DNA from: Bugula neritina
Lineage: Eukaryota > Animalia > Bryozoa
DNA length: 64,000 bases
NCBI GenBank assembly: GCA_964035545.1
Contig: OZ037765.1
Coordinates: 32,921,504-32,985,503 of the forward strand
Direction of reading: 5' to 3'
The position numbers and the translations under genes were made by a program. The notes beneath the pieces were generated by a model, which saw only the letters and a list, made by a program, of their open reading frames with translations, was not told where the DNA came from and searched no databases. Positions 242 through 41,093 of this stretch are shown here, one piece after another (position 1 is the first letter of the stretch; each line of letters opens with the position of its first letter).

Positions 242-379
242 TCTCTGTCAGCTGACTCAGTTAAAGATACTAGACATAGGAGGGAATCCTCTCAACACAG
301 TACCAGATGTTGTGTCATCACTCACATCACTTAAACAGTTGAATATGAGTCACTGTAGAATATCCAGTCTACCTGAGAG
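242..379 (+). CDS. LRR cassette exon A (138 nt, two 23-aa LRRs)
   Basis: ttattacAG|tctc...gagag|GTttgt; SLCQLTQLKILDIGGNPLNTVPDVVSSLTSLKQLNMSHCRISSLPE; phase 2-2. Confidence 0.9.
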
Positions 380-3300
380 GTTTGTGCTTCACACGCCTGT
401 TACTACTTCACAACCTCATTATTACCTTGATCCCTTTAAAGTATATCTGTACACAATTTATATTATGCAAAATAATATAAAGGATATAAATGTGTAGGTG
501 AATTTTGTACCCAGCTTAAAGTTTTGGTAAAACACAATGAGATGGGAAGGGTGGAGTGCATTATGATTTGAAAACCACCCTCTCTCATGAAAAGGTGGAT
601 TATAATTTTGTTCTACTTCTATATTAAAATATCCCAGCTATAACGTAAAATTATATTGCTACTTAGCATTTTGCTAAAGTTTTCATGTGGAAAGAATACT
701 AGATATAGGTTGTTACTAAAGAAAACAGTGGTCTAGGGGCTTGAACCCGACAAAGGCCATTAGTGATGTTAGGAAGACTACCCAGTACCCAGTCACAATT
801 GCTCCTGTGCCCCATCTGAATAAGTCCTTAGCCCAGTTTAACGAAAAATCATTTCATCGGGGATTTTCTCACAGGGATGGTGATTATAAATTTTCGTCAG
901 TTTTATTTTTAAATAAAGCGAACAAACCACTTGTTATATAAAGTACTAATACCTATTAGTGACATAATTTGTTACTGATCACTTATACATCAAATCTCAT
1001 TTATCTTATTAGATGAAACAATTTAAGGTAAAATATTGTGAAGATTGCAAAAAAAATATTTTGTTTTGTCGAGAGAACTTTTCGAAGCTATAAACTGCTG
1101 CATGATATTTCATTATCTTTCTGTTGTAAATTTTTATATTATATTCTTATATTACAGTTTCTCCCAGCTGACTCAGTTAGAGACACTAGACATGGTAGGG
1201 AATCCTCTCAACACAGTACCAGATGTTGTGTCATCACTCACATCACTTAAACAGTTGAATATGAGTAACTTTGGTATATTGAGTGTACTTGAGAGGTTTG
1301 TGTGTCACATGTTCATTACTACTTCACAACATCATTATTACTACTCTCTAACTTATATTTATACACAACTTATAGTGGGGCCATTTTACTTAATTTAGTA
1401 GACACTCAAAATCTCCAGTTTTTAGCTACTTTTCACAATTTGGCTGCTAATTTATATAGGTTTTTACCCAAAACTAACAAAATGTTAACAAAGACAACTA
1501 AATATTTCAGGTTCTTTTTAGTTTTGCTTAGTTTTCCATGTTTTTCCCCAATTGTTTAAGTAATTTGGAGCTTCGAACCATTACAAAAATTCTGTGACAG
1601 TCCGCAAATCTAAGTTAACTGATTAAATGGGGAAAAACATAGGAAATCAAGCAAACTTAAGAAGAACCTGGATTATTTAGTTGTATTTGTTAATATTTTG
1701 TTAGTTTTAGGCAAAAACCTATAATAAAAATTAGCAGCCAAATTGTGAAAAATAGTGTTGTAGTTTAGCGGATTACTACAAGTGTGGTGTTATTGTGTGC
1801 TTAGACTGCTAGAGCATAGCCCTGCTACGAGATTTACTTGAGAATCGAGCAGTGGTTGAGATTAGTTGACAATTATATTTATGATACTAATTACAAACCA
1901 AGTCACATCCAGTCAAAAAGACATACAAAAGAAAAAATATATATAGTAGTACAAGTAAGGAGCTTCGCACGGTATATCTGCATGGAACGAATGAATGCCC
2001 CCGGAAGGTCCTCCTTATAAGCGATGGTCTCCTCTGATTGGTTGGTGGCTTCTGGCAGGGGGACCGCAGCAGTAGTGGCGTATTATCCTGTGCCACTACC
2101 GCAGAGAGTGTGGTGTTTTAGAATGTTAGCCCAAGCCTAACAACGAGGATGCTATAATACTTTTGTGACTATAATATAGTTACGCTTTGCATGTAAGTGT
2201 TCGTATACCTAGTTGGCGGGAGATAGCGTATATGCTTCACGGCCATCACATCTCTACCCCACCAGCAGAAAATAAAACCTTCTGATTTCAAACCTAGGTA
2301 TCAGAACATAAAAAAATTTACATATTAAAAAAATACTTTGTAATATTGGATGATTAAAATTCGTAATAAAATAATAAAACAACAATAAAAAAGTCAGCTG
2401 TCCACTGTTACAGGGCGAAAAGATTGAAGCACCACAGTCAGTGAGGTTTGCATTTCAAAAAAAATATAACAAAAGGAAAGGAGCTATAAAAAGTTATTTT
2501 AAAAAGATGAATTTTAATTATAATGTACATTTTAGTATAAGCACCGAGATTGATGGCCAGATGAACAATTTGGCCAAAAAACACAGACTATCTGCCTGGC
2601 TTAGGGTGACGGGCTCTTCCTTTCTGTCCGGCGAGAGAGTCTTTGACACTGGCCAATTCAGTGATAACAGCCAGCAGCTGAGGAGTCAGCTGGCTCAATT
2701 TCTCTTCCAGCTTGTGGATGTGCTGCTCCAAGTCACAAATAATGCTGGATGAGCTAGGAATGGGAGATGGGCACGAGTGCCTCATCTTCTTTTCGGGCTT
2801 TTCCGCACCAGCGAATGTTATGAGGACCTGGAACCTTTGACCCAGTCGAGTCGTCAAATGACAACTCAAGGAGATGGAGGTCTCGAAGAAGAGGATCCAG
2901 GGGCATGAAAAGATAAAACGGATTCCTTAGCTCTAGACAACGACCAGCTGTGATGGCCCACCGGGAGAGAAAACCTTTGACAAGCTGTGACAACTGGCCC
3001 CAGTCCTGGACTGAGGTACTGATAATTTGGAAGAAATCCTTGGACATGGCAGCATCTACTTCAGGAAGGTGGCCCAAGTGGCATTTCATTGTCTTCTGAT
3101 TTCTGATGACATAGTCACGATTGTAACTGAATTCCCCACATGGGCAAAAGATCATTGCAAAGTGTTGGACAACATGGACACGTAAGTGACCGTAAGTCAT
3201 GAGCTGTTCTTGGCATAACTTTCAGGCTGTGTTATCAGGGGGCTCGAGTGTATTGATGATATCGATAAGGATAGATGGAAGAGTCCAATCTGACCGATGA

Positions 3301-6300
3301 TAATGAGCTGTGAGCAGTCCGCCATCTTTGAGTGCAGGCTGACTTTCTATCAGAGGTAAGGATTGAGTCTCCAGTATGGGGTTATCATCCCAGCTCATCT
3401 CTGGAGAAGACGGGGCACCCCGCCATGGCAGATAGAGTGGAATCTAAAAGAGCAAAATCAGGAGTAGATCTTTACTTCCCAACCTATGTGATTCTCAACT
3501 TTTAGCAACCTGTGAACCACTTACCCCTTTATATGGCACTTGCGAGACTATTGACAACTGCCTAGACTGATTAAGAGCAATAGATTCTAGATCTCCATCT
3601 AGTAGATCGTCTGTAATTACTAAGTTCTCATTGTCAATCGCGGTTGTCAATGTCCTCAGTAAGTCAAACTTAAACTGACTGTCTGAGTTGGACTGCACTG
3701 ACATCAGATCAGTTGCTCTAATAGTAAGCATACTTGATCTGAATGACTTACCTGCAATATCAGCAATTGAGTTCGCACTTAGATTATTAAAAGCTGTTGT
3801 ATCACAGACAGGTAGCGAGCGTCTCGCTCCATGGGTTGTCAATGTGAAAAAGACCGGGCCGCGTGGTTATTGCAAATAGTACAACTTTTGTGTCATTGGC
3901 AGATTAATCCCGCGCACTGCTCCACCTTCGCATTGAGAAAACTTTTTTTTTAATTGCACAGCTTCCACACCACCTGGAATGGTTCACCGCGGTGACTTCC
4001 GCCTAGCTCTTATTTTGCCGCGTTGCAAGCAGTCACATACAAAGTCCTGTAAGTAGGACATAGGCTCATTGTTAAGGCCAATGGTGGCTTCTCCTTTGGG
4101 GCTTCTGCCACCAAAGGAGGGGTCACGGGGACGGGAGTCCACTAGGACCTCTTCCTTATTACTGTGACTGGAACCTCTATTTAGAAACGGGATCCTCATT
4201 ATCCCAGGGATGGCAGTGGGGAGCCTGGTCAGGGCAACCGGCTTGTCCGTAGGTTGGGGTGGACAACTGGGGGCTCTGGTTCTATCTACCAGCCGCGGTA
4301 CTATGATTTTATACTCAGGACCGCGTCTCACCCGTCCGGACGCTGCTGGCTGCTTCCTGGGCTCAAGTAGCAAAAGTGCTTCACCCACTGTGTTGGGGCT
4401 GACCCAATATCGCGAGCTTCGTTCTGCACAGAGATCTGCCCAGACAACCTTACCTTGTGCATATGATTGGGCAAAGCCTCGACTACTAAGTAGGACCCCA
4501 CGAACATGGGCTGTAACTTAGCTGACTGCCCGCAGTGCCTAAAATAGCTAGCCATCCAGACCCAGTCCCGCGCCTGATAGAGCAGATGCTCCTCGAAATC
4601 TTCTTCCCGCAATTGGCATTGCTTCTCACAGAGCATGTCGTGTGCGGTTCTCATTTGTTCTACCAGTTCCTCTACGTACTCATGTGCAGAGCTTTCGAGG
4701 TTCGGAACAAGGTAGGTCAGGTGGTCGGAGATACGCGTCTCTCGACCCAGCATTAGGAAGTTGGGAGTCTCAGATGTGCTCATATGAGGCATGCTGCAGT
4801 ACGCATGCATAACCTGTGAGAGCACTGTATCCCATTCCACCTGTCTTTGGTCGAGAAGCAGACTCCGGAGAGCATCACCCAGCATGCTGTTGTTCTGTTG
4901 GACAATCCCATTGCCGTGTGGGTGATACGGGGTAGTCCTGCTCTGATTCACCCTGGGCACCTTGATCGGAGTGTATCTGTTTTGGCATACCCAGATAACA
5001 GAACACATGCTGCTCTAGGGCCCAGGCCACAGTTGAGGCCGACACATCTGGAATAGCTAGAGGGTAGCCCACCAATTAAAGTGGTCTGTGAGCATCAGAA
5101 TCCAATTGTTATCTTTGGGGGGTCGCGGGCATGGGGCCTACCAGGTCAAGAGCCATCACCTGCCAAAGTCGCCCTGTGTATAGCCGTCTCTGCCTCACAC
5201 TGTCTGGAGGGCGGCTGTGTTTACTGGCCTGGTAGATTTTACACTGTTTCACTTTCAGCCGCACATCACGACCCATCCACGGCCAACACCATCAGAGTTG
5301 CAATTTCTTGACCACTCGCTGGACCCCTACATGAGCCTGTTTGTGTGTGTCCCAAAACAACTCACGACAGATAGCAAAAGAACAAACTACTCTTTCGCGC
5401 CCTGGATGTCTGTCCTTAATGCCCAACGTGATAGTCAACAGACCATCTTTATTAAACCAAAGTGAATCCCAGCGGTGGCAGAACATCTGGAACTCAGTAC
5501 ATCACTGCTGCTGCTCCTCTTCACCGAGTAGCTTCCCTTCTTTGTTAGCCTTATAAATGTTGGTTACTACTCTAGGTAGCGTTTCCTGGAGTTTACGCAG
5601 CTCCGTGACATTCTCAGCCAAAACCGGATTAGCACAGAGAGTGTTTACAGTACCCATAGAGAGCTGGTCGTGAGCTCACCTTGTTCTCGGATGTAACCAC
5701 TGAGCAGATCAAACTGTGCTTCTATGTCAGAGCGAGGGGGCTTCATCTCTCTTCTCGATATTTAAGCACTGTTTGTACCCTCCCTCAGGACGTCGGCTTA
5801 GCCCATCTGCATTGCCTTGTTTTTTCTCAGGTCGGTGTTCGATCCGATAGGAAAACTCGGCCAGGATTTCGAGCCATTGTGCAACCTGACTGGAGGGTTC
5901 GGCTTTATTGCACAACTTGATCAGCTAGGCATAGTCTGTCCACAAGCGGAACATCATCCTGTATAGATAGGGTCGGCCAACGTGTCATTTTCCCTTTTGT
6001 CTCTCATTCTGAGTGTGTCAAAGAGTCGGCGGTTTAAGAGATTTGTAGTACACCGTTAATCCAGCAGGAAGGTGGCAGCTTTGCCGGCTAATTTGCCTCG
6101 CAAGAGGTAGCTACCACCATAGGGTTGTACTCTAGTTCTCTTAGCGTTCTCGACCTCTGTAGGTGACACTCCTCGAGCCTCGAGTGTAGACGGAGCCTGT
6201 GTCTGGTGGCTATGAGGTGGTCCTAGAAGTTGCAGAGGCACGTACATAGACTCGGGGTCCTGCCTCATCTCTTGGACAGACCACTCTTCTTGTGGCCTGT

Positions 6301-9300
6301 CGAAACGGTTTCGGAGTGGGCATGTGGTGGGAACAGGCCTGTTGGTCCTATTTGGCACCTGCCACTCAGTTGGTGGCACTGTTGACATTCTCGCCGGCTG
6401 TGAGTGGCTCCCCTGTGACCAGTGACTTATCTCCAGCCTGCGGTTGGCGGAAGAGGTTGTGGGCCGCAGTGGTTCAACTCCTGTCACCTGAGTTGCAGAC
6501 ACTCCCTGCAGAGATGTCCGCGGCTCCCGCATTCTCAGCATATTGGAGCTCGTCCTGTGGCAGTATCCACCCCCAATTTCTTGGGCCTCATAGCAGGTTT
6601 AGTCATTTGGAACTGCACCAGAGCCGCCACCAACTTGCCCACCATCTCTGTCAGGTGAGCGATGTCAGCAGCTAAGGAGGAGCTGGCCATGGAGACAACG
6701 TGAGCAGTTGGTTCAGACTCAAGTTTAGTACTCCGTAGCTCTGTCTCAACCTGGCAAGAACTCACTGGGCTTTTATGCAGCTGATTAACCTGCAAATAAG
6801 CCTCACTTTCCCTGAGTGCATCCTCGGCTGTTTTTACTCCGGTCGTCAGGAACTGGTGGTGAAGTCCCAGCTCGCCTAATGACTGTACAAAAGCGTCGTA
6901 GGTGTAGCGCTCCTGGTTTGCAGGTGACAATTCGCTGTGTGTGATTTCTGTCAACCATTTTACCGTGGCGTTATGTTCTTGCAAGGGTGTGTGTGGGTCA
7001 CGCCGCAACCCCAGCAAGTGAACCCTGGCGTCAATGCCTGAGAGGCCAAATCGGGCTAGTACGGTGGCAAAAATGCTGTCAACATTGGTTCCTAACTTGT
7101 AGGGTTTGGCCTTATCTGTCAACGCCAGCCACAGTTGTAAGAGTTCGACCCTAGGTGGCCACTGAGAGACGGTGACCACATCACTGAACTCTTGAATAAA
7201 TTTTTCCACGTTTGTTTGTTTGTTTGTTTTATTTTGTCGTAGTTGGAGAAAAAAAATTAATTGAGAAAAAATAAACAAAATGACAGGGCCTATGGCGCAA
7301 TAGCACTGTAGCTAGTCGAGGCGCCGAGCCATGAATGGTTGACAGTTATATAAGATTTTTGTTTAGGTTTTTGGAAGTTTTAGCAACTCAAAGAGTTTTA
7401 TTTTTTTATCTGGAAATTTGCCATTAGGTGGTCTCTCAGGGCAAATTTGAAACCAGCCTCCCTCTCCACAGCACGAATAGAACTAGGCAATTTATTCCAT
7501 AGCGACGAACATTGGAATTCCACTCTTCGTTGACCTGCAGCAGCAGCATAGTCTTCATTACTATTAAAAATGTGGGCTTTCAGGCAGTATTTGTCACCAG
7601 ATAGTTCTCTGTCTGCTTCCTCGCTCCGCGGTGTCAGATTACTAGGAACTTCAAGGTCTACAGGCTCACCTTCAGTCTCCGTTGGCTGCGCCGGTGGCCT
7701 GTCTTCCATCAGGACATCTCTCTCAGCGCCTCCCCCGTTAGGGTCGGACATCTGGAATTTTCTCTCCTAGTAGGATGGCAATTGCATCTGCACACAGAAA
7801 TCTCACTGCTGCTACCACTGTTGTAGTTTAGCGGATTACTACAAGTGTGGTGTTATTGTGTGCTTAGACTGCTAGAGCATGGTCCTTCTACGAGGTTTAC
7901 GTGAGAGACCCAAGTAGTGGTGGATATTAGTTGGAAATTATATTTATAGTACTAATTACAAACAAAGTTGTGTCCCGTTAAAAAAACATACACAAGAAAA
8001 AATATATATAGTAGTACAAGTAATGAGCTTTGCACGATATATCCACATGGAACATATGAATGCACCTGGAAGGTCGTTCTTGTAAGTGAAAGGTCTCCTC
8101 TGCTTGGCTGGTGGGTTCTGGCAGGGGGGCCGCTGCGGTAGTGGCGTATTATTCTGCACCACTAGAGAGTGCGGTACTTTACAATGTTAGTCCAAGCGTA
8201 ACAATGATGATGCTATAATACTTTTGTTATTATTATAATATAGTTACGCTTCGTACGTAAATGTTTGATACATAGTGGGCGGGAGATAGTGTATATGCCT
8301 CATGGTCATCACAATAGCTAATAACTGAAGTTTTTGCGTGTGTACTAATTAAAGCAAAATGACCCAGTAATATAACATAAAATAATTTACAGGATATAGA
8401 ATAAAGCTGTAGTCTCTGTACTGTGGCTGAGTTCCATGTGCTATATAATGAGCTGGTAAGGATGCAAAGTGAAGATTGGAAAAGCTAATATAAACCTTTT
8501 ATAGGGCTATGAGTTGGATTATGAAAGGAGTTGTATTATTGTATATATCAAAATGTTATATAGTTTATAATAGTTGTATACATTATATGTTATTAGGAGT
8601 TGAATATACAGCACTGATGCAGTTTATATTTTATATTGTTATATTGAATTCTCTATAAGCTTAGAGCCACAGGGCGCAGGTTTTCTGCATGCGGGTCCAA
8701 ATTTTTGAAAACTCATTGTGGGAACAATCTGTCACACACAATGCGTGGGTTGTGGATGCAGAAGTTTGTTAGCTAATGATCTTGGAGTTTAACTTTACTG
8801 CTGCCTACCGACGTTTGTTTTTAAATGTATGTCATCGGCAAAGTGACTTCAGATAATATTAAAGCGGAAATGCAAACTACACAAAGCTGTTTTAATTCAG
8901 TTCAATATAAATTAAAACTTGAATTGAAATTCTGCACTCGCCGCTCAGCATACGTTATCTACATAAAAACACGCACACAACAGCCCACATGAGTAACCCT
9001 AGTAGTGTGGCTCTACACTAAGCTGACTAGGTAATTCGTAATAATTATGTAATGACTCACTATTCTTAGCAGTGAATAAAAAAGAGCTGCTTAAAACTAA
9101 CCAGCAAGCTTTGTGCAAAATCTCCTAAAACTTTCACAAATTATATTATTCAGACCTGTTTACTCTGAATATTTTGAAGCAAAACAGCATCCCGACATAA
9201 AGATGCAAATAATGAAAATATAATCTACCATGTATTGAACCAGAACTAGTATTATTCTGTCATGATAATACTGTATGAAATTTGTATTATATCCATTGCA

Positions 9301-12300
9301 TTCAATATATGAGGTACTATTATCCTGCTTTACTCAGGATGTTGTTTTGAATGATACTCAATATTTCTGTGAAATACTGAGATGCGATATTTAACTCATA
9401 CACATATCAATACTGCATATGATGCTTATATTGTATGTAGTTATTTTCTCTTCTTATATTCTGTATATATTTATGTTCCAGTATGTATCAGCTGACTCAG
9501 TTAGAGACACCAGAAGAGACACCAGACATGGAAGACAATAGCTTCACCACAGTAAGAGCTTTTGTATCATCACCTAAACAGTTGAAGATAAGTAGATCTG
9601 GAAAATTCAGTCTGCCTGAAAGGTTTGTGTGCCACATGTTTATTACTACTTCACAACATCATTATTGCCTTCTAGTTTTAAATTATAATTATACACTACT
9701 TATAGTATGTAAATTAATATACAGGATACAGAGGGTAGCTTTATATAACTTTTAGGCTTAACCTGAGATTCCTGTGTTATACAATAAACTGAATAGGGTG
9801 CAGTGTAAGTATTTATAGAGCCACCCTATCTTATGGCTATATGAGTTGAAATATGAACAAACTTGTACTTTCCTACAAGACAACAATTAGGTAAAGATTT
9901 ACACGAGTTTCAAAGCACATATATTGTATTGAGCACAAAGAAGGTTATCCACTGCCAAAATTGCCCCAGGTGATTTTAGGTAAAAATACATGGCACAGGT
10001 AAAAATGGCACTAGTAATTAAGGGCATAAATGGAAAAGTAGGAAAAAAGCCACACTAATGTTAAATTTTCACAAAGCCTCAACCCATGAAACCCAACCCA
10101 AACTCAAACTCCCATTTCCAAACCTAAATCCTCACCCCAAACACCTAACCTCACCCAAACCCTAAAATTGAAAATGTGACATTTTTTCCTACTTATCCAT
10201 TGTTATCATTTTTGCCAGTGCCATTATTACCTGTGCCATTTTTACCTGTGCCATCTTTATCAGACACCGCCACAGGTAGTTGAACCCTAGAAATGATATT
10301 GCATAGCTTCTATTTATCTCTTGTGAGAACAAAAGTAATTGTAATTGTAATATTGATTACTTTGCCATGTAATTGTAAATAATTACATTACTTTTTAACT
10401 GTAATTATAATTGTAATTGTAATTGACAAATTTTCATGTAATTGTAATTAATTACATTCCCATGTAATTGACCCCAAGTTAAAATTAATCTATATATAGC
10501 AACTATTACTTGATGAGTTGTAGAGAATGAAACTAATTGTTTACTTTGTCGCAGAGTGCACTTACATTTATATTTCTGATGTAGTACATGTAAGCACATT
10601 ATAGAAACTAGCTTATATAATTATTGTAATCAGCTTTGATAATCTAAATCCAACTGCATTGTACATTAACATTGCATTGCTATCAGTTCAGCTTTCCTAA
10701 TTGTTGTCAAATGAATATTTTGAAGTTTAATAGAGATGATGAACAGAATAGTTTGACTTTTAAGACAGTTGACTCTTTAAATATTAATTTTAGCTCAGAA
10801 TATTCTACAATATAATGGTAGATATTTATAGTTTAGACACACCACAAGATCATGGCGGTAAATGGTGACCAAGTATTTTGTGGTTTTCACTTAATAAATT
10901 ACTGACTCTTAATATTACTATTAGTCACCACTTACTATGCTCATGTTACAAGTTGTTCTTAGCTTATAGCAGTTGGTGTTATTGCAGCACTTATTTTCTT
11001 AGAGATTAAATGTTATAAAGCTGAGCTAGATTCTTTTTCTGTAAAAAGGTGTTTATAATAGAAAGTGGTTTACTTGCCTCTCATCAAAAGACAAACTCAT
11101 TGTTTAAACAGTTTCACTTTTTTTATTATTTCAAAGCTTTCTTTAGAAAATTTAACTTTTTCTCAAAATTCTTTCAAGAATAATTTCTTGTTGAATTCTC
11201 TATCTAACAAAACTTAGAAAATTTTGCAGCTGTATATTAAAAAACTCCGAAATCTTCATGAATGCATGTTAGTCCACAGCTTCCAAATATATATAATTTC
11301 AAACTCTTAACATTATACTTTTAAAAATTGCAAGAAACGGGACAAACAATTGTTACTGCCATATTTATTTATTAGATGCCGAGTTGTTTTGACTTTTAGT
11401 TTGAGTAAGCTAGCTAGGAAAAGAATACATTTTGTAGTTAAAGTTTAATTGTTCAAATTATTTGTAAGCTTCAAATAGAAATTGGTACTTCTATGTTTGC
11501 TCAAAATTTTTATTTTGTTGTTCATTCCAATTTTCTATTTCAACAAATGTGATGCTATATAGGTTAAATAAAATAATAAGTTAAAAATTTTATGTAATAG
11601 CTGATATATCTTAAAACAGTTGTGGCTTCCTGCCTATATCTGTATTGAATAAAGTAATTATGTTGTATGTGATTTTATTCTCTTCTCACTATGTATATCT
11701 TAATACTACAGTTTCAGTCAGCTGACTCAGTTAGAGATACTAAACATAGGGTGGAATCCTCTGAACACAGTACCAGATGTTGTGTCATCACTCACATCAC
11801 TTAAACAGTTGGATATGAGTGGCTGTAGTATATCCAGTCTACCTGAGAGGTTTGTGTGTCGCATGTTTATTACTACTTCACAAAATCATTTATACCTCAC
11901 TTTAAACAGGATTTATATTCAACTTGTTGTATATAGACAAGATACTACGATCAACAAGCTGGGACATACAACTAATAATTGAACATTTCTATATTATTGT
12001 AAATTATACATATTTATGTTGTTGTATACCTTTATATTGCAGTCTCTCCCAGCTGACTCAGTTAGAGAATCTAAACATAGGAGGGAATCCTCTGAACACA
12101 GTACCAGATGTTGTGTCATCACTCACATCACTTAAACAGTTGAATATGAGTAGATGTGATATATCCAGTCTACCTGAGAGGTTTGTGTGTCACATGTTTA
12201 TTACTACTTCACAACATCATTTATACCTCACTTTGAACAGTATTTATATTCAACTTATAGTATATAGACAAGATACCACAATCAACAAGCTGGGACATAC

Positions 12301-15300
12301 AAGCAATAATTGAACATTTCCATATTATTGTAAATTACACATATTTATGTTATTGTATACCTTATATTGCAGTCTCTGTCACATGACTCAGTTAGAGATA
12401 CTATAAGACATAGGAGAGAATCCTCTCAACACAGTACCAGATGTTGTGTCATCACTCACATCACTTAAACAGTTGAATATGAGTATATGTGGTATATCCA
12501 GTCTACCTAAGAGGTTTGTGCGTCACATGTTTATTACTACTTCACAACAACATTATAGTACCTCACTTTAAACAGTATTTATATTCAACTTGTTGTATAT
12601 AAAGTATAATATGGAGTAGCTATAGTCTGACTGTGCTGTGTTATACAATGAAATGGTAAGGGCGGAGTGCAATAATATGGAAATCCACCCTTGAGCATGG
12701 TCATGGATTTTAGCCAATACCACGATATTAGGAATAAAATATTCAATTATTTATAAAAAACACAAAATATTTATTCCTGCTGCATTATTGAAGTATCACA
12801 GTGCTCTATCAACAAGTTCATATTTATGCAAGTATTTAATTCAGAGTTTGATAAACATAATTATATAATCTCTAGATTTAGGGGTACATAACAGTGACTA
12901 TTGATCACAGGTTAATAATGATGAAATAGTCATAAAAAAGGTGTGAAAACAATACCAGTAATAAATAGTTATAGCATCAACTAGCTTTATTTGTCACCCA
13001 TTTTAAAAATAAAAAGAACAGCCGACACCCTAACTATTTAATATGCAAAACCTGCAGATTTCTTCATTGATAAGACGTTGCTGATTAAATTGTATAGTGA
13101 TGTATACTATGTATAGTAATATATACTATGTATAGTAATGTATACTATTTATAGTAATATGTACTATGTATAGTAATGTACACTATGTATAGTGATGTAT
13201 ACTATGTATAATGATGTATACTATGTATAGTAATGTATACTATGTATGGTATTGTGTACTATGTATAGTAATGTATACTATGTATAGTATTGTATACTAT
13301 GTTTAGTAATGTATACTATGTATAGTAATGTATACTATGTATAGTAATGTATACTATGTATAATGATGTATACTATGTATAGTAATGTATACTATGTATA
13401 GTGATGTATACTATATGTATAAAAGTATATAATATGTATAGTAATGTGTACTATGTATAGTAATGTATACTATATATAGTAATGTATAATATGTATAGTA
13501 ATGTATACTATGTATAGTAATGTATACTATATATAGTAATGTATAATATGTATAGTAATGTATACTGTGTATAGTAATGTATACTATGTATAGTAATGTA
13601 TACTATATATAGTAATGTATAATATGTATAGTAATGTATACTATGTATAGTAATGTGTACTATGCATTGTGATGTATACTATGTATGGTGATATATACTA
13701 TATATAGTATTGTATAATATGCATAGTGATGTATACTATGTATAGTAATGCATACTATATGTATATTAGTATATAATATGTATAGTAATGTATACTATGT
13801 ATAATAATGTATACTATATATAGTAATGTATAATATGTATAGTAATGTATACTGTGTATGGTATTGTGTACTATGTATAGTATTGTATACTATGTATAGT
13901 AATGTATATTATATGTATAGTAATGTATATTATGTATAGTAATGTATAATATTTGTAGTAATGTATACTATGTACAGTAATGTATACTATGTATAGTGAT
14001 GTATACTATGTATAGTGATGTATACTATGTATATATGTGATGTATACTATGTATAGTGATGTATACTATGTATAGTAGTGAGTATACTATACATAGTGAT
14101 GATATACTATGTGTAGTAATGTATACTATATGTATATATAGTGAAATAAGGATAATTCAGTAAGCTATGTAATCTAATTTTATTATTTGCATTCATATAA
14201 AGCTCCAAAAAATTTCTCTCGTGTCAATTTGACTAAATTATATCAATAAATACTAACAAACATTGTCCTTATATAGCATTGTGAGCCTCTTAAACCTCCA
14301 GCGTCTGGATATCTCTAATGGAAGGTATCCACTGAACCAGGAGCCTAAAAACCAGATCACATGTTTACCTGATAACTTCAGCCAGTTATCTAGCTTGGGA
14401 ACTCTTGACCTCAGTGGAAACGATACTCTGAAAGTTCTGACACCAGAGATAGCTGACATGCCTCTACTAACAAAATTATGTGCTGATGGTTGTGAGTCAT
14501 TGACTTCACCACCATATGAAGTTTGTCAACAAGGAGCAGGTGCCATCAAGCAATACTACACAGACATTAGGAACCATGACAGTGTAGAGGTTTCCATGGT
14601 AACTGTTGCTGTCATTGGTCAGACTATGTCTGGCAAGACTAGTCTGATTAAGACACTACAGAGTACAGATAGAACCAGAGTTCTTACTCACAGAGTAGAA
14701 GGTGGACTTGATGATGATACGACCCCAGTGTTCAAAATGGAAGATGTTTGTGTAGATAACGATGTGTTGAGATTCATTGACTTTGGAGGTCATGAAATCT
14801 ATCAGTCGACATATCAGTTTACGTTGAAACCAAATTGTATCCCAGTTGTTGTTGTGAGTTTGGAGCAGTATGAAGCCCTGCAGCATGATATTGGTGGTAA
14901 TGAGGCAGTGAGGCGACTGTATTTTGATTGGTTGTCACATCTCTACCTGACCTATCCTAACCTCGGACCTCCTAACTTGGTGTTGACTCATTTGGATAAA
15001 ATTGATGAAAGCGAGCTTGAAGACATTCAAGACAGTTTTTTTAGCCACACGAAGCATGTTTTTGAAATCATCAGTCGCGATGAAAAGAGCAAGTGGAAAA
15101 ATGGAGGTGCTTTTGCAATAATTAAACATTTTGAAGCAAAGAATATGTTCAAAGCTGAAGATATTTATAAAGTTGGAAATGCTTACTGTGAAGCTTTCAT
15201 CCAGCTAAAAAAGAGATTGCTGAGAGAGAGTAAGCAGTTTGTGAAAGCAATACCAACAACCTGGGTGAAAGTTGAACAAGCCTTGAAGAATTTCAAAAAA

Positions 15301-18300
15301 GGTTACATGTCATTCCAAGATATCTTCAGCCAGTTGTCTAGCAGCATTTCATTAACTGAAAATCAACTTGACATCATCCTGACATACATGCACAACTGTG
15401 GCATGTTGCTCTGGTACAAGGAGGATGTGGACTTGCGTCCTTACATATTCTATCACATCCCCACAGTTACTTCACTCCTCCAAGTTCTGTTTACTCATGA
15501 TGACACAGTTTGGCAGCGTCGTCTGTCAGATTTTGCTAATCCTACTTCTGCTGGTCAACAATTCCTCACACTAAATGAATACAGGTTGTTTGCTGAAAGA
15601 TTTGCTTCAACAGGAATCATGCATGGTAAGATGTTCAAACATTTGTTAAGAACCGAAACAGACTTTCAAGAGAATGCTGCAATGAGAGTTGCGGCTCAAA
15701 TTTTGCTCTCATTCAGAATAATGTATCGCTCTACACTACAGAATGAAGAGAGCTCTTTCATTGCGCCATACTTCTGCAAGGAGTTCCTTAGTGACAACTT
15801 ACCCAACACAGGGAATTGTGTCACCTTTCATGCTCAGCTACGTTTTGATGGTCTTCCACTTCCACAGTATGCCTACCACCAGCTTGCTGTGGACATGGTC
15901 AATTCTTTCTCTCAAGAGTCAGACTGCATAACAGCCAGAAATAATGGAGCTCATGTGGTGAACAAAGATGTAACCTATCAGCTTGTACATGACTACAAGT
16001 CAGGAATAGTAAACATTTGTGTTTCCTTTGACTCCAGACAAGTATGCAGAGCATGGGAAGTTCTGGTTGACATCACCAACTCCTCTATTGAATACATTGA
16101 GACCAGATGGTGTGCCTGTAAAATAGGATGTAAATTCTTCTGTGCTCACTGTGAGCTAGAACAAGACCACCACCCATTTAGCCTCATGAATCCTTCTTGG
16201 GTCCAGTACCATGGCAAGAGATCGGCGCCCTTACCTCCCTCTTTCTTGCCTAATCAGCTCAGATGTAAGAACTTTTTTATTGTTTGCATTACTACTGCTA
16301 ATAAGCAACTATCAACGTTAATTCTTTGAGCTGTGATGCTTCATATTTACATTTATGTCGATTGTCCGACTTTAGCACAGCAGCTCAATGATTATGAAGA
16401 TTTCAATGCAGAGCTTGACTACTTTAAAAATAGACGTCTCTTCTCTAGCCACAGACATCACAATGTAAATTGGATTGCTGAATCAACTGGTGGGAAGATA
16501 TTTAGATGCAAGAAAGATTCTTCCACACCTTCATGTCTCCTCAACCCTTGTGAGTACTTTATACACTCATAATATAAAAACGGTTTTGCAGTATCATTGC
16601 TTATACAAATTGTGTAGTGTTTCTGAACCTAGTTATTACATTTCTCAAAATTCACTAGTTTATTACCATAATATGTGTTGCAGGCTCCAGTTTGTCTGAA
16701 GAAGAGAGCGAATGTCTTTCAAGTTATCTCAGCAAATATCAAAAGCCCAAGTCTACAGGTACTGTATGTTCATCCTATTATACTAATGTTTGTTATAGTA
16801 ATTATAGAAAGAATCTGAGTATGAAGTAAACATATGATCAGTGTGTGAGTATTTAAAAAACTCTGAATGTATATGTATATGCAACATATACTGTGATGTA
16901 TTACTATAAAAAGTCTATAAAATAATGTAGCATATTATTATAATAATAAATTCAGGTGAGATTCAAATTGAATCTGATAATGAAGGAACTGATGCTGATA
17001 GTGATATCTCTGAACACGAAGACTTCAGCTCACCACAAGAAGCCGGTAACATCAAAATGGAAGTTTCTGAGACCAAGAAAAAAAAGATAAAACGTCTGTT
17101 CTATTCTAATGAGGTACTTTAATAAATATTTTATAGTTGTTAGGTATGAACTACATAGTTCAAATATTTTATTTATAAAGTATTATTTGTGGTGAAATAT
17201 CTTTCACTTATAAAAACATGTTGCTCTTTTGAGTATGGTAAATGCACAATGAATTTTTTCTGCTTTCTACCAACCAGTTGAGCGCAGCTGAATTTAGTAA
17301 ATTTAATTATAGAGTTCAGTTGCATTTATATTTTCATTGGTGCTGTAGAGTATTGCAGTGAATGCTGTCTGCAAAATCCCATAAAATTATTCAATCTTAT
17401 CAAACAAATAAGAGAATGATCACCAGTTGTTAAAAAAATTTATAGGTGTATAAAATGAGTGAGACAGCAAGAGGAAGAGCTCTGATTATCAACAACAATG
17501 TTTTCCGTGATAGACCCGAGCTCTATAGAGAAGGATCTGCAGTGGATGTGTCTAATATCCGAGCAGTTTTGGCACATTTGAACTTTGAAGTAGATGTGAG
17601 ACGTGACAGAACTGCTGAGGTGTCCAAACATATAATGCCATATTTTGTTATACTTGTAAACATTAGACATTTCATATTATTCCTATATACTATATTTAAT
17701 CTCATGATTTATTCACAGGAAATGCCGAAGGATATCAAAGATGAGACTCAAAACCCTGACAATGAAGACTATGGTATGCATGTCACTGTACTCATGTCTC
17801 ACGGTGGAACATTTGGTGCTCACGGAGTTCTGTATGGGACTGATGTGAAACCAGTGAAGCTTCTCGATGTCTTTGATTTGTTGTCTTCCGACAACTTCAA
17901 GCACATGGCTGGAAAACCTAAAGTTGTGATCGTGGTAGCTTGTAGGAGTGGTGAGTTGTACATATATCTTAACGCTACTCATATCATACAGGTAAATCTT
18001 TATAACGCTGAAAAGTTTACAGCTCTCCAAATGGCATGTTTTATTGTCTTTCTATGAATAAACTATTATTTTGCTTATTTTTATTTAAAATTTCTTGTAT
18101 CTTATTTCTGTACCATAGATCACTAAGTCTTGTATCTATCCCAGCAGACAGATACAATAGATAGAGTAATGCTTCTTTCACATCTATATAATATAACTAT
18201 TGGAATTTGTAGCTGCCACAGATGCCCTGATAGAGAGAGTAGAAGCTGAGTCTGAAGAGAGTTCAGCCACACAGGAAACTCAACAGGAAACTCAACAGGA

Positions 18301-19071
18301 AACTCAACAAACTCCAAGTAGACAAAATGACTTGAATGTTGATGATCTGTTGATACTGCAGTCTTGCTTTGATGGTAAATCTTTGTGCTACTTGTAAATG
18401 ATGATACTGTCTAGTATATGTATCTATATGTTGGTAGCTGTAAGAATTCTCTAATTAGCTGTTGAGGTTTAGACTGTTATATACTTTTTCTTAAAATAGG
18501 AGTACCGCAATATTACTTTCTACAAAACTCTTAATTTATAAATGCCGTATAATTTATGTTTTCTGTTGTTGCTGACCATTAAGATTTATCATGTAATTTA
18601 AGCCTAAAATGTAGAGTGTATGCAGCAATGTATCTCAAGTATATTAGTGTCAGGTCAACTCTTTCAAACAGAGAAGAAACTATTTTTTAGGTCGGAACTC
18701 TATACGAGATGCAAACTATGGAAGTCCATTCATCAGAGAGTTGGTTAAAACTCTGTACAAACACTCTTCCCATAGAGATCTTGCTACTCTGTTTGATATC
18801 GTAAGTGTGCAATATTTGTCTTTGGTACAGATACTGAGAAGTTTCCAGATGTCTCCTGATATAGGAGATTCAGAGATGTACAGGTGTTCTATTAGTCTGA
18901 TAAACTGATACCTTGTTACAGGTGCAAAGAAGAGTCAAGAAAGTTACTAAAAAGATCTCTGAGACACGTCCGGAATTTTCTGAGCAGGTGCCGATAACGA
19001 CAAAGACTCTCACAGACATGAGGAAAATTTTCTTATTTCCTAAACACAAGATTTCTTCCCCAGCAGAATAG
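242..19071 (+). CDS. Multi-exon gene (5' incomplete): LRR cassettes - ROC GTPase - COR - Cys-rich motif - acidic linker - caspase (p20+p10)
   Basis: Canonical AG/GT boundaries with compatible phases join 14277-16264, 16376-16549, 16684-16758, 16956-17113, 17446-17619, 17719-17950, 18213-18374, 18691-18800 and 18922-19071 into one open frame of about 1,070 codons ending TAG at 19069-19071. The upstream LRR exons are phase 2, matching the phase-2 acceptor at 14276. Confidence 0.85.
719..890 (+). mobile_element. SINE fragment (tRNA-like head, V-domain-like core)
   Basis: Homologous to the reverse complement of 25248-25434; core gtgatgttaggaaga... resembles the V-SINE domain. Confidence 0.55.
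1158..1295 (+). CDS. LRR cassette exon B (138 nt)
   Basis: tattacAG|tttc...gagag|GTttgt; SFSQLTQLETLDMVGNPLNTVPDVVSSLTSLKQLNMSNFGILSVLE; phase 2-2; 3' end has lost the C and LP consensus residues. Confidence 0.85.
2588..3443 (-). pseudogene. Decayed ORF3 (Zn-finger + coiled coil) of Gypsy 1
   Basis: A*KLCQEQLMTYGHLRVHVVQHFAMIFCPCG...C and ICDLEQHIHKLEEKLSQLTPQLL align with ORF 34494-35281; stop and frameshifts. Confidence 0.8.
7211..7550 (-). mobile_element. 5'-truncated CR1/L2-group LINE 3' end inserted in gag of Gypsy 1
   Basis: Interrupts gag between NED and VEKFIQEF; encodes SLWNKLPSSIR...FKFALRDHL* typical of the CR1/L2 ORF2 C-terminus; 3' tail aataaaa(caaa)n. Confidence 0.75.
9482..9622 (+). 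CDS. Degenerate LRR cassette exon C (141 nt, frame preserved)
   Basis: gttccAG|tatg...gaaag|GTttgt; MYQLTQLETPEETPDMEDNSFTTVRAFVSSPKQLKISRSGKFSLPE; 12-nt duplication plus 9-nt deletion; many consensus Leu lost; same downstream intron motif as the other cassettes. Confidence 0.65.
9967..10269. mobile_element. Palindromic MITE with internal (CCTAAC)-like tract
   Basis: ggcacaggtaaaaatggcac at the left vs gtgccatttttacctgtgcc at the right; central aaccct/cctaac-like repeats. Confidence 0.6.
10335..10480. repeat. (GTAATT)n-rich subterminal remnant of a DNA transposon
   Basis: Clustered gtaattgtaattg repeats ending gtaattgaccccaag. Confidence 0.45.
11712..11849 (+). CDS. LRR cassette exon D (138 nt)
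   Basis: actacAG|tttc...gagag|GTttgt; SFSQLTQLEILNIGWNPLNTVPDVVSSLTSLKQLDMSGCSISSLPE. Confidence 0.9.
12043..12180 (+). CDS. LRR cassette exon E (138 nt)
   Basis: attgcAG|tctc...gagag|GTttgt; SLSQLTQLENLNIGGNPLNTVPDVVSSLTSLKQLNMSRCDISSLPE; 331 bp after exon D (tandem unit). Confidence 0.9.
12373..12513 (+). pseudogene. LRR cassette exon F (141 nt) with in-frame TAA
   Basis: Intact AG/GT sites; reads SLCHMTQLEIL*DIGENPLNTVPDVVSSLTSLKQLNMSICGISSLPK; 3-nt insertion gives TAA at 12404-12406; 330 bp after exon E. Confidence 0.85.
13091..14140. repeat. 19-bp minisatellite (TGTATAGTAATGTATACTA)n, about 55 units
   Basis: Direct tandem array of about 1.05 kb. Confidence 0.95.
14277..16264 (+). CDS. 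Large exon: terminal LRRs + ROC GTPase + COR domain (ROCO/MFHAS1-like)
   Basis: Branch point TACTAAC 14251-14257, AG 14275-14276. LRR cap LTSPPYEVCQQG; P-loop GQTMSGKTS; switch II FIDFGGHEIY; G4 LTHLD; COR motifs IPTTWVKVE and YMHNCGMLLWY; CAHC near the end; donor GTaaga at 16265. Confidence 0.92.
16376..16549 (+). CDS. Post-COR exon (ends ...IFRCKKDSSTPSCLLNP)
   Basis: tttAG|ca...t|GTgagt, phase 1-1, 174 nt, open; C-terminal motif resembles the C-x(n)-P-x2-L-x2-P end of MFHAS1-type ROCO proteins. Confidence 0.7.
16684..16758 (+). CDS. Linker exon (CSSLSEEESECLSSYLSKYQKPKST)
   Basis: ttgcAG|gc...acag|GTactg; 75 nt; phase 1-1; open. Confidence 0.75.
16956..17113 (+). CDS. Acidic linker exon with basic patch (GEIQIESDNEGTDADSD...KKKKIKRLFYSNE)
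   Basis: ttcAG|gt...gag|GTact; phase 1-0; open. Confidence 0.8.
17446..17619 (+). CDS. Caspase large subunit exon 1
   Basis: tatAG|gtg; VYKMSETARGRALIINN...REGSAVD matches the caspase Y-x-M...RG-x-ALIINN...R-x-G-x3-D motif; phase 0-0. Confidence 0.9.
17719..17950 (+). CDS. Caspase large subunit exon 2 (catalytic His and Cys)
   Basis: cacAG|gaa...g|GTgagt; LMSHG (His 17800-17802), GKPKVVIVVACRS (Cys 17941-17943). Confidence 0.92.
18213..18374 (+). CDS. Caspase intersubunit linker and start of small subunit
   Basis: ttgtAG|ct...g|GTaaat; AATDAL...QETQQETQQETQQ...DDLLILQSCFD; phase 1-1. Confidence 0.85.
18691..18800 (+). CDS. Caspase small subunit exon
   Basis: ttttttAG|gt...atc|GTaagt; GRNSIRDANYGSPFIRELVKTL matches the S-W-R...GSWFI motif. 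Confidence 0.9.
18922..19071 (+). CDS. Caspase terminal exon
   Basis: ttacAG|gtg; VQRRV...EQVPITTKTLTDMRKIFLFP...* matches the caspase Q-x-P...TL...F-x-FP end; possible polyA signal ATTAAA at 19303-19308. Confidence 0.9.
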   Translation: MQRRVKKVTKKISETRPEFSEQVPITTKTLTDMRKIFLFPKHKISSPAE

Positions 19072-20179
19072 CTGGGATATGCAGATTCATGTTGCTGGGT
19101 TTAGCTTTCCCTTTGTGGCACTGGCCTACCATTATATAATCTTGCATGTTATAACTCAACTCTCTAATTTATAGCTAGTTCAGTTAGCAATGAGCAGAGT
19201 ACTGGTTATATATCACTCTCATTATCTACTACTTAATCAAATCTATTCTATGCTATTTCTATGTGATGGCTAATCTATCCTAGAAGATTATTGATGTGTT
19301 TTATTAAATTTAACTTTTACACATTGTGTGTTTTCAACTAACATTTCTATATATGCATGTTTTTTTATTATTTCATACTATTTATAGTTAACTATAGTAA
19401 TACGCAATACTTTATATCATTTGATTCACTGGAGCTTTGTTTTACACCTGAACTTTTACTATAATAAATTATATTTAAAAGGCATGAATACTTGCTCTTA
19501 AATTCCTATTAGTTTTTCCAACAAGAGTAGAAAGTATTTATTGAACATGTAGAGTTGCCTACCTTTTCTATCAATTTATCCAGCCAGGGATCTTTAAATC
19601 ACAGTGTTATTGCAAGTTCTGCCAGTGAAAGATAGCTCAAACATAGTAGAGTAGCTGTGGAAATTAGTATTATATATCCTGCACAAGTTTGTTGGGAGAA
19701 GTGAAAAACGTGTATTATAGTTGTTATGCAACTCTAAATAATTTCTTACCTTTTGTAAATTTATGACAAGCTATTAATATAATCCTCGTCATTTATGACA
19801 ATGATTAGAATAATCCCATGTGTGTATATGCTTGTGTACCAGGCACATATTTTCCGACCAAGTAGGGTTTTTTGGAATGTTGATTGTCACATCCCTCGAA
19901 TAAGAGGCATATGGGTGGGCAATGCTTTATTCAGTTCACTCTGATATTATATATGCATCGCCCTGACCCACTTTAGTCATATGCATACACTACACTGTTA
20001 CATTGACGCTTGCTGATTGATGTTTAATACGCATTGTTATTTATAACTGCCATCAGAAGTATAGCGGTGTGGTTTAAAAAACAGCTATTCCATTTTCAAT
20101 GAATATACAATAGCATAACTTTCGATTTAAGAAATGAAAAAAAACTGCTTGAAGCAGCACAGATTTGGAGGTGACTCAA

Positions 20180-23100
20180 CACAGAGAGAAATATTAGTGT
20201 TAGAGTGAACATTAGCTGACAACTAAAACCTCTCGTTTTTTGGATCCCTAAATTGACCAGCAGTGAATAGAAATTAGTGTCAGGTACTGTTCACAGTGAA
20301 TAGTATGTTAGATCAATGTTGATATAAAGAGTTGTGAAGTTGATTCTTTTTATTTGTCACAATAAGCCAAGTTATGTTCAATGGTGATCTTATATATGTT
20401 CAATGGTGAGTTTATATATTTTCAATGGTGATCTTATTTATGTTCAATGGTGAGCTTATATATATTCAACGGTGATCTTATTTATGCTCCATAGTGGTAT
20501 TATATATGTTGAATGATGATCTTATTTCTGTTCAATGATGATCTTAGATATGCTCAATGCTGAACTAAGTTATATTCAAAGCTGAACTTATAAATGTTCC
20601 ATGCTGCTCTGATTTTTGTTGGAAATAAGCTTCTGCAAAAATTATTACTGATCACTCTGAACTAACTTGTCATAACTTCTAACCGGTATGAGAGTATAGT
20701 AATGGGAATTTTATTGTATATGATAGTTGAATATAAGAAATGCAACAAAAAATAACTTCTAAAGATTGAAATAAAAAAAAACATGAAAATAAACATTTGC
20801 AGAATTTTTCTACGACTGTAAATTCAGTTAACTTTTCTCAATATTAGCAGAACCTGCTAAGACCATAGTGTGTGTCATTACATTCTTGCTCTGTAGTGTA
20901 GCAGTTGTAGTGTGTAATGGTTAGCACTCCGAGTGGTCAGGGAAGTCTGAAGGAGTAGTATAAAAAAGGCAGCTGAGTTCTTGAAAAGTGGGTAAGGTGT
21001 AGTGTCGAGAGCACCCAGTGACGCTTGTAATGTAGTGGTGAGTGCGCCTGCTTGCAGGCTGAAGGCCTCAGCATGATTCAAAGTTTTGTAACGGTCAAAC
21101 TTTTTTGTGTGCTCCTATTCAGCCTCTTTGAGTGCATGTTCTTAAAAAATGTTATGGGATCTACAACAAAAGATAAAAGTTGGGTAACATTTAAACTGTA
21201 TTAGTATGAACAGTAAACATTTGGTTAAGATATACAATCACAAGCAGCGTAAATAAATTAAGTTCAACTTTGAAGAAGCTGAAGTCTAAGGCCAAAACTA
21301 ATAGTATCGATGGTGTTAGCTATGAATCTTTCAGCATATTTTCAGCACCACCGTACCAATCGTTTGACTCTGAATAACCATACAGGCTTTGGCAAACTTA
21401 TAATCATTATGTTGCGTAGTGTTTGGGTTAGTTTGAGCTTATCAAAATTTAGTAACAATTTTGGCCATCATTTTATTTTACTTCTTTCTTAATTACAAAT
21501 GCAAGAGCTGTTGGGCATAATTAGTTTAGTTAATAGAAGCTTTCTCTGCATTAAAATGATCTTAAAATGTCAGTGAACCACAACTTAAGCTGGTGTCAGC
21601 ATTTTATATGGACCCCTCATATCGAGATAACAGATATTGATAAGTTTCAGTATGTCTATAAATTGAAAAACAAATAAAGTACTACCAAGAGAAATATTGC
21701 TACTTAAACATGTTTTTATATTTAATTGTGCTGTGCAAAGATAAATAAAAGAATAAACTGGTAGCACGGAAGTTAATAAATTTTTTTTGCCAACTCACCA
21801 CTAATATTGGCATTTTGGTACTTAGCTATAAAACAAGAAGCTAGCTTGGCAGCTGCTTAAGGCTAATAACTACTTGTAGGCTGCTAAACTGCATTATTAC
21901 CAATACTTCTACAATGGGGGGGGGGGGAATTCAAATTAATGAATTTAGCACAAATTGCTAGAAGGTGAAGTGGAAATAAAACGCTAAATTTTTTGAAAAT
22001 AGATTGTTACAGGAAAACTCGTATTAAATTGACATAGGAATAGAGTAGTTTGGGAAATATCAGTCAATGTGGTCTCTTAAAATTTATAGTTGCACAAATT
22101 CAATTATCTGTCTACAGCAAAAGTCATACTGTCATTGTGATATCAAATGACAGCGTTAAGCAAATGATTGAGCTTACCTTTTGCTGCAATGACAACTTCA
22201 GTTCCTAACTCTGAAAGAAAGTGATCATCTTCTATCTCTGAGAGGTAGCTGCGATCTTTACCCATGTGATGAAATGATTCAATGTTTTCCATGTTGTGAG
22301 GTTGTTTGAAAGCACAAATTCACTGAATCTCAAAGCACAACCTCTTAGTCTGAGCCTCTGGTGTTCACTATGCCGGCAGAATATTTCTTCCGTCAATAGC
22401 CGTGAATGAAAACTATGTGCTGTTATGTAATAACCTTTGTTTTGCGCTTTCGATGCTTGGTAAGCCAGTTTCTTGCCTTTGAATTACAATTTAAATATTT
22501 CCTTACTATAGCTCTGTTATGCAACATCTTCTTTTGTTCCGCCAGGTAGTTTACACAAGTTACTTATTAGGCTTTTGAAGTGGCTCACCTGATCCACAAT
22601 TGACTATTCAGTAGCTTGTTTCATTGTTAATTTTAAGCTTCTTGTTTGAAACACATTTGCTGATAATTGAGTACATTGGAGTTTAATGGTGCATCTCCCT
22701 GATCTCTCTTTTACACACATTTTAAATTAGTTGGCTTTCCTTTCCATGAATGAAATTGACTAGTGAAGCCTAAACTACCCATGCAAGAGATATGTGCAGT
22801 TGAAATTTTTTGTTGATAAATTCAACTTAAGTCTTTGATAAACGGAGTGGGGCAATGTTTAATAGTAGTCTGGTAACAAGCTATTTGAAAATGTTTTGGG
22901 TTCAAAAAAATTTTGAAATCATAAACAGCTAGTAGGTTGAAAGAGTTTCATTCCACTTATATGCTCCCTAGTTAGGTTGTATTTTTTGTTTTGGTACTAA
23001 GTTTTATATACCTATATACCCTTATATAACTTTCATATGAATCGCTAAACATAAAATAACCATTAATATGATATATTTGCAATAATATTTAAATTTTCCC

Positions 23101-35281: not shown

Positions 35282-35595
35282 CTGAAAAAGTTTCAACAGT
35301 GTTAATACAGTACACTGCTGTGTTGTCAGCTTGAACAGCTTGGCAACTCCTAATTCAGTTACCTCGTAGAGATTTATGGTAGTGAATAGTCAGATAGAAC
35401 ACGTATTGCAATGAGATTATAAAAATCTCTAAGTCAAACTGAGTTCTTACTACGGTATTTCACTAACCTATCTCCAGCTCGATTGACTCGGTGAGTCAGA
35501 GCTGAGCGATGCAATCTAGTTTCGTATTAAGATGTAGTTAACTCACCCCACGATCTGTTGTCGTAAGACATACTGAATGTGTGAAATGGTTTGAA

Positions 35596-41063: not shown

Positions 41064-41075
41064 CTTGGATGCACT

Positions 41076-41093
41076 ATCCCACCGCTGCCACCA
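41076..41093 (-). promoter_or_regulatory. Primer-binding site complementary to tRNA-Leu 3' end
   Basis: TGGTGGCAGCGGTGGGAT directly inside the 5' LTR; complements ...atcccaccgctgccaCCA. Confidence 0.85.

Follow-up and report, generated by a model that had tools for sequence, protein, structure and literature searches.

Organisation of the gene

We have analysed a 64-kb stretch of DNA from the bryozoan Bugula neritina (contig OZ037765.1), called the window in the following, and in particular a gene at its left end whose exons encode leucine-rich repeats (LRRs), a ROC GTPase domain, a COR domain and a caspase. A B. neritina protein, KAF6026298.1, is 83% identical. Nine exons between positions 14277 and 19071 of the forward strand link the last LRRs, ROC and COR to the caspase. 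All nine have an AG acceptor and all but the last, which ends at a TAG codon, have a GT donor; the exit phases (1, 1, 1, 0, 0, 1, 1, 0) are compatible at eight of eight junctions, and there are no internal stops. The LRR-ROC-COR part is thus joined in frame to a complete caspase, and the four modules share one reading frame. The original prediction, made from the sequence alone, had proposed exactly such a chain of nine exons, and splice sites, phases, the lack of internal stops and Pfam matches bear it out. Note that Pfam was run exon by exon, and that database homologues stand in for the full-length protein in the fold model and in the trees.

The large exon (14277-16264, 662 codons) holds the last LRRs, ROC, COR and the first half of a cysteine motif (CAHC at 16141). 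It is followed by linker exon 2 (16376-16549), with the third cysteine of this motif at 16507 and the fourth spanning the next junction, by linker exon 3 (16684-16758), which is given by the exon model and by RNA contigs, and by linker exon 4 (16956-17113), which is acidic and of low complexity. Two exons encode the large subunit of the caspase: the first (17446-17619) has an arginine of the S1 pocket in the motif REGS at 17527, and the second (17719-17950) contains the histidine of SHG at 17797 and the cysteine in VVACRS at 17932-17949. The intersubunit linker exon (18213-18374) carries an aspartate six residues past the catalytic cysteine, a Glu-rich segment and the start of the small subunit, which continues in the exon at 18691-18800, where the second S1 arginine lies in SIR at 18699. 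The last coding exon spans 18922-19071; an RNA contig extends past it to 19336, and possible poly(A) signals are found at 19303 and 19463.

Upstream, six phase-2 cassettes with two repeats each form the LRR region; four are clean, one is degenerate and one contains a stop. The first cassette (242-379, 138 nt, two repeats of 23 residues, phase 2 on both sides) is open and is the most 5' exon in the window. The second (1158-1295) is open as well, and so is the third (9482-9622, 141 nt), in which the repeat pattern is eroded. The fourth (11712-11849) and the fifth (12043-12180) are open; a 331-bp unit, repeated 2.7 times in tandem, has the fourth cassette in its first copy. The sixth and last cassette (12373-12513), directly 5' of the ROC-COR exon, has a 3-nt insertion and an in-frame TAA at 12404-12406, while its splice sites are intact. 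Because of its symmetric phase it can be skipped without a frameshift, and the window copy gives the full four-module protein only if it is skipped. At the LRR positions that by prediction lie on the concave face, the ratio of nonsynonymous to synonymous differences per site (pN/pS) is 2.2, compared with 0.8 elsewhere, a descriptive figure from nine cassettes that are not independent of each other.

Two of the LRR introns have a content of their own. One contains a decayed Gypsy-type element on the reverse strand (1756-8313), with long terminal repeats (LTRs) at 1756-2250 and 7819-8313 that are 86% identical, TG...CA ends and a 4-bp target duplication, ATAG. In the intron before the large exon there is a minisatellite with 54 copies of 19 bp (13091-14142), and a related array is found in L001, one of two Bugula paralogue sequences (L001 and L002) that we used for comparison with the window copy.

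No start codon for the gene was found within the 64-kb window. Since the first cassette is an internal exon, the gene probably starts further left, beyond the window. Neither were any further ROCO or caspase pieces found elsewhere in the window.

The ROC and COR domains

The motifs of the GTPase are kept in the large exon: G1 (GQTMSGKT) at 14617, G3 (DFGG) at 14779 and G4 (THLD) at 14986. In the same exon Pfam reports LRRs, COR-A above the cut-off and Roc with an E-value of 1e-4, which is below the cut-off. The ROC domain matches that of CtRoco with an E-value of 5e-9, and LRRK2 is matched as well. COR follows directly after ROC, as indicated by the COR-A match and by the comparison of a homologue model with CtRoco and LRRK1. 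This model was built for a Watersipora homologue with an alignment of 64 rows (predicted local distance difference test, pLDDT, 83; predicted template modelling score, pTM, 0.67); over some 700 columns it aligns with LRRK1, LRRK2 and CtRoco, and in it a helix and a disordered segment separate COR from the caspase. Atlas searches returned only MFHAS1 or ROCO clusters, with scores below 0.9.

There is no protein kinase domain in the window exons or in the homologues, unlike in LRRK and DAPK. A NACHT or NB-ARC ATPase of the type of the signal transduction ATPases with numerous domains (STAND) was not found either; the NTPase is a Ras-like ROC. The protein may work like a NOD-like receptor (NLR), but it is not one.

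Downstream of COR, four cysteines (CxxC, C and PC; 16141-16685) are kept in bryozoan and amphioxus members, and three of the four are among the six invariant columns of the alignment. As judged from this pattern, they probably form a zinc site.

The caspase

Pfam finds Peptidase_C14 in exons 5 and 6 and, weakly, in exon 8. The His-Cys dyad (motifs SHG and ACR) lies in a full fold of large and small subunit; the homologue model gives a Z-score of 27.7 to CED-3 and of 27.6 to caspase-9. Both S1 arginines are present, REGS aligning with the Arg of RxGT/S and SIR with the family Arg before GSxFI. The original prediction had listed the dyad and the two arginines, and all of them are present. It had missed, on the other hand, that the S1 glutamine of QACxG is absent: the catalytic motif reads VVACRS, with Val in place of Gln. 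The same Val is seen in L001 and in one RNA contig and is thus a trait of a subfamily and not an error. Gln is present in every aligned Watersipora and amphioxus member, the motif being QACSG (in one case QACGG) in Watersipora and QACRG in amphioxus.

What could the loss of this residue mean? Drosophila Dronc, a caspase with a long prodomain and the motif PFCRG, lacks the S1 Gln and cleaves itself after Glu (PMC2180229), an example of a caspase that is active without this residue. The intersubunit linker exon of the Bugula gene encodes 8 Glu and 5 Asp in 53 residues. Given the precedent of Dronc and this Glu-rich linker, it is a reasonable guess that the loss of Gln relaxes the P1 specificity towards Glu in the Bugula subfamily. 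Note that Dronc uses a CARD and the apoptosome, unlike the Bugula protein, whose specificity we infer.

No CARD or DED prodomain was found in the window exons or in the full-length homologues. The caspase is of the animal type: its nearest relatives are caspase-9, caspase-3, caspase-2 and CED-3, and it has the introns of animal caspases. We considered a bacterial origin of the caspase and rejected it. We also rejected a dead pseudocaspase, as His and Cys are intact and conserved. Apart from this, the intersubunit linker contains a 12-bp repeat encoding QETQ, with three copies in the window (18271-18309) and more than 25 in L001 (5616-5929); to go by the sequences, the length of the linker could tune activation.

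Transcripts

The RNA evidence consists of contigs from four runs, taken as RNA and placed on 14200-19400. In a run labelled RNA-Seq, one contig of 671 nt is spliced across four introns, with the end of the COR exon followed by the linker exons and by the first exon of the caspase. The joint between the last linker exon and the caspase (17111 to 17444, GT..AG) occurs in four of four runs, and in another contig the end of an LRR cassette is spliced to 14278. The contigs lack the predicted introns, with GT..AG at the joints, and the depth is zero in the two bins that are wholly intronic. Most of them are 90-95% identical to the window copy, the bridging contig about 92%.

In summary, the family is expressed as an LRR/COR-caspase fusion, and the RNA evidence holds at the level of the family and not of the window copy. 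Transcripts that end or start between 16264 and 17446 had been named in the original prediction as the sign of two separate genes; for the family, the contig spliced from COR to caspase refutes this. Furthermore, the contigs reveal a second class of paralogues with a shorter and different linker between COR and caspase (16221-17444) and a different sequence after the exon of the catalytic cysteine. In one run this class is deeper than the form that matches the window copy.

Selection and paralogues

We compared the window copy with L001 using the ratio of nonsynonymous to synonymous substitution rates (dN/dS). It is 0.14 (0.04-0.36) for caspase exons 5-6, 0.26 for ROC and 0.35 for COR; for the LRR tail it is 0.79 and for the linker 1.4 (confidence interval 0.5-5.4), both with wide intervals. 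With L002 as a third sequence beside the window copy and L001, changes could be assigned to the branch of the window copy on nucleotide alignments. The large exon has 24 silent and 27 replacement changes on this branch (pN/pS 0.32), and caspase exons 5-6 have nine silent changes and no replacement. A dN/dS near 1, which had been proposed as a sign against a working gene, is thus not what we see in the catalytic domains.

The silent divergence from L001 (within 14277-18374) is uneven: it is 0.30 in the large exon, higher than in the downstream introns (0.09) and in the linker exons (0.06). This mismatch and the patchy identity suggest gene conversion between paralogues, which are then mosaics, and which blurs the selection figures.

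L002 (9215-13098) comes from the GenBank draft contig that encodes KAF6026298.1. Four LRR cassettes are seen in it, none with the TAA of the last window cassette. It is annotated as two genes, a split due to several 1-nt indels or frameshifts in the draft. Automated annotation may hide the ROCO-caspase family.

Relatives and origin of the fusion

At least nine proteins of Watersipora subatra in RefSeq have ROC-COR and a complete caspase, most of them with LRRs, and at least 11 proteins of Branchiostoma species have ROC-COR and a caspase in one chain. A Watersipora gene that we mapped follows the plan of the Bugula gene: its phase-2 exons carry two LRRs each, ROC-COR lies in one large exon, and the caspase region is split into five exons. 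A mapped amphioxus gene shares five intron positions in the caspase region with Bugula, and a single exon encodes its LRR-ROC-COR part. In RefSeq, the relatives from Watersipora are labelled as homologues of MFHAS1; the likeness to MFHAS1 is a matter of these automatic names and of similar features, as our quick trees contain no vertebrate MFHAS1, nor Owenia or caspase-2.

In the trees, the bryozoan ROC-COR domains form a long-branched clade of their own, and the caspase-bearing ROC-COR domains of amphioxus are nested among amphioxus ROCO proteins with GT4, OTU or Death outputs. One clade of all caspase-bearing ROC-COR domains is rejected (approximately unbiased, AU, test, p 6e-9, and p 0.013 when every amphioxus row is included). 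A single clade of their caspase domains is not rejected (p 0.12, in a quick LG+G4 analysis on a reduced set of rows). On these sequences, the simpler reading is that a CARD-type caspase gene became fused to MFHAS1-like ROCO genes on separate occasions, while an old fusion with later swapping of the output is a possible alternative. The ROCO genes nearest to the bryozoan clade (L007-L010) have no caspase exons downstream, in L009 and L010 within only about 1 kb.

Two observations concern other proteins with such outputs. Several Branchiostoma proteins (P0124, P0143, P0108, P0167 and others) have interchangeable outputs, namely a GT4 glycosyltransferase, an OTU protease, Death, a caspase or several of these, as in bacterial systems. 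A metagenome contig (L004, 514-3324, protein P0201) has an intronless open reading frame (ORF) of 936 residues in which a pannexin-like/LRRC8 domain and LRRs are combined with a QACRG caspase, that is, a different fusion of sensor and caspase.

Other elements in the window

An inverted duplication of about 3.6 kb (20179-23782 and 59606-63277, 89-95% identical) includes a 22-bp minisatellite, and neither copy has a ROCO or caspase match. A young Gypsy-type element on the reverse strand (33896-41402) has 308-bp LTRs that share 99% identity and, besides gag-like and pol frames, an additional ORF of 273 aa (34494-35315) without a Pfam match; it is related to the decayed element at 1756-8313. A second LTR element (43770-48680, forward strand) has identical LTRs of 173 bp and one gag-pol frame of 1370 aa. 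A palindromic element of about 330 bp, similar to miniature inverted-repeat transposable elements, occurs in two copies (1426-1755 and 55219-55564), and the LTR element that begins at 1756 has inserted at the border of the first copy.

Discussion

The gene belongs to an expanded family of bryozoan ROCO proteins that resemble MFHAS1 and have a metazoan caspase as output, and its product most likely acts as a single-chain cytosolic danger receptor. Variable LRR faces together with a conserved catalytic core fit a receptor-like role, as far as the sequence can tell. The original prediction had already read the gene as a single-chain receptor. Splicing, full-length homologues from two further lineages and the fold model of a homologue support the architecture; the change from Gln to Val and the cassette with the stop had been overlooked.

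How might such a protein work? Initiator caspases activate on dimerisation. In the mechanism that we hold with moderate confidence, the protein would rest as a GTP-loaded monomer. An LRR ligand, or clustering on a repetitive surface, would favour hydrolysis or release of GTP and dimerisation through COR, as in CtRoco. The COR dimer would place two caspase domains, each tethered by a linker of about 130 residues, close to each other. Induced proximity would activate the caspase, which would cleave itself in the Glu-rich linker between its subunits and subsequently a downstream substrate of cell death or inflammation, with no adaptor involved. The original prediction had relied on nucleotide-dependent dimerisation of ROC-COR but had left its polarity open. 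CtRoco, the best-studied Roco protein, is monomeric when bound to GTP and dimeric when free of nucleotide; on this model the caspase would fire after the loss of GTP.

Several points weigh against this interpretation. Ligand binding, dimerisation, GTPase and protease activity are inferred for every member of the family, and human ROCO proteins do not all follow the cycle of CtRoco. Pfam does not detect COR-B in the large exon. The pN/pS contrast in the LRRs rests on the nine non-independent cassettes and no formal test. Val for Gln could reduce the activity of the caspase instead of shifting its specificity. Finally, no RNA run holds more than 10% of the sequence words of the window copy, and the bridging contig is from a paralogue or a distant allele.

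Could the window copy be a null or truncating allele? The TAA cassette would then be kept, the message degraded or an LRR-only product made, and the ROC-COR-caspase part would have fallen silent recently. The last cassette before the large exon has an in-frame TAA and intact splice sites, and a degenerate cassette and a 6.5-kb LTR element lie in the LRR array, as one might expect of such an allele; no RNA run closely matches the window copy. However, neither stops nor frameshifts occur in the nine 3' exons, and the changes on the branch of the window copy are strongly purifying. Cassettes with phase 2 on both sides can be left out of the transcript, as happens in ROCO genes of brown algae, and the RNA runs derive from other colonies or cryptic species. 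We regard a null allele as unlikely.

Somewhat less probable still is that the caspase is gated within one chain, similar to DAPK1, with the LRR-ROC-COR body as an inhibitor that a change of shape driven by nucleotide or ligand, or cleavage of the linker, would release, and with COR dimerisation not being the trigger. Papers describe intramolecular control of DAPK1 by its ROC domain, and the helix and disordered stretch before the caspase in the homologue model would leave room for it. The linker exons are without purifying selection, and a second, shorter form of the linker exists in the RNA; a linker that evolves so fast speaks, on the other hand, against a fixed inhibitory interface.

It is about equally improbable that the proteins are not pathogen sensors but serve polypide regression, metamorphosis, the rejection of non-self or a substrate unrelated to death. 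The non-canonical active sites (VACRS, QACSG) suggest special substrates, and colonial animals use cell death in allorecognition. Yet a large copy number, turnover of cassettes and variable LRR faces are typical of receptors driven by conflict, and allorecognition would use the same molecular mechanism. Note that intramolecular gating, a role within the colony and a null allele are not mutually exclusive. Two neighbouring genes, a ROCO gene and a caspase without prodomain, are very improbable: the split annotation of L002 and the presence in RefSeq of some 20 short caspases from Watersipora that fall into the same clade would agree with them, but the indels of L002 explain the split, annotations made independently for two further genera show full fusions, and the joint and the bridging contig described above connect the two parts.

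To return to the single-chain protein, its LRR-ROC-COR core and fold are common to MFHAS1/MASL1, LRRK1, LRRK2, DAPK1 and CtRoco. It differs from the ROCO kinases in having a caspase and no kinase as output, and its ROC-COR part has strongly diverged, with Roc under the Pfam cut-off and no COR-B match. The closest parallels are fusions with a caspase. In amphioxus, Zhang et al. (2008) listed LRRs-caspase proteins and proposed that they link pathogen recognition directly to apoptosis, with no mention of Roc or COR (PMC2575513). Like the Bugula gene, they combine an LRR sensor and a caspase in one chain. Three amphioxus database models (BRAFLDRAFT_67388, BRAFLDRAFT_75631 and BRAFLDRAFT_80701) are LRR-ROC-COR-caspase proteins, although they need not be the models of Zhang et al.; as described above, amphioxus ROC-COR does not group with the bryozoan one. 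A survey from 2024 reports one caspase of Owenia fusiformis with a ROC pro-domain among the CARD-type caspases (PMC11463336), a lophotrochozoan ROC-caspase fusion like that of Bugula; LRRs, COR, an expansion or a test are not mentioned there.

In prokaryotes, Kaur et al. (2021) described conflict systems of the type LRR-AP-GTPase(ROC)-COR, with a caspase among at least 24 effectors (PMC8195603). They share with Bugula fast-evolving LRRs, ROC-COR, a swappable C-terminal effector and several paralogues per genome; they differ in being bacterial and only predicted, whereas the Bugula caspase is of the animal type. Brown algal ROCO genes, whose LRR exons are shuffled, resemble the sensor part, with tandem phase-2 symmetric LRR exons before ROC-COR and diversifying selection; alternative splicing is described for the algal genes (PMC11378527). 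They have one repeat per 72-bp exon, as opposed to two per 138-bp exon in Bugula, and no caspase is mentioned.

We found no functional test of a ROCO-caspase in the literature searched, which largely excludes subscription journals, and no paper on an expansion of ROCO-caspases, on cassette exons or on altered active sites in bryozoans; searches for caspases of Bugula and Watersipora gave nothing relevant. The original prediction knew of no characterised protein with this architecture. This holds with respect to function, but both the architecture and the shortcut from recognition to apoptosis are in print (PMC2575513, PMC8195603, PMC11463336). In other words, the family is uncharacterised and its architecture already published. 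What the window copy adds is an active site without Gln, an array of cassettes with a broken last unit and the conservation of the catalytic part on its own branch.

What is the meaning of such a fusion? The nucleotide state of ROC-COR and the control of the output by dimerisation are debated for LRRK2 and its relatives. As caspases report dimerisation, a natural ROC-COR-caspase fusion turns this question into a simple protease assay. Tentatively, and on balance still doubtfully, bryozoans might have a large and diversifying repertoire of adaptor-free immune receptors built on a ROCO GTPase and not on a STAND ATPase. Skippable cassettes of two repeats would vary the sensing, the loss of GTP would lead to the COR dimer and to the firing of the caspase, and one Bugula subfamily would have shifted to cleavage after Glu. 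This would be a GTPase-gated equivalent of the inflammasome, put together independently in bryozoans, in amphioxus and in bacteria, and its protease would directly report the disputed monomer-dimer cycle of ROCO proteins. If true, animals would have an adaptor-free route from sensing to cell death in which a GTPase takes the place of the NLR ATPase.

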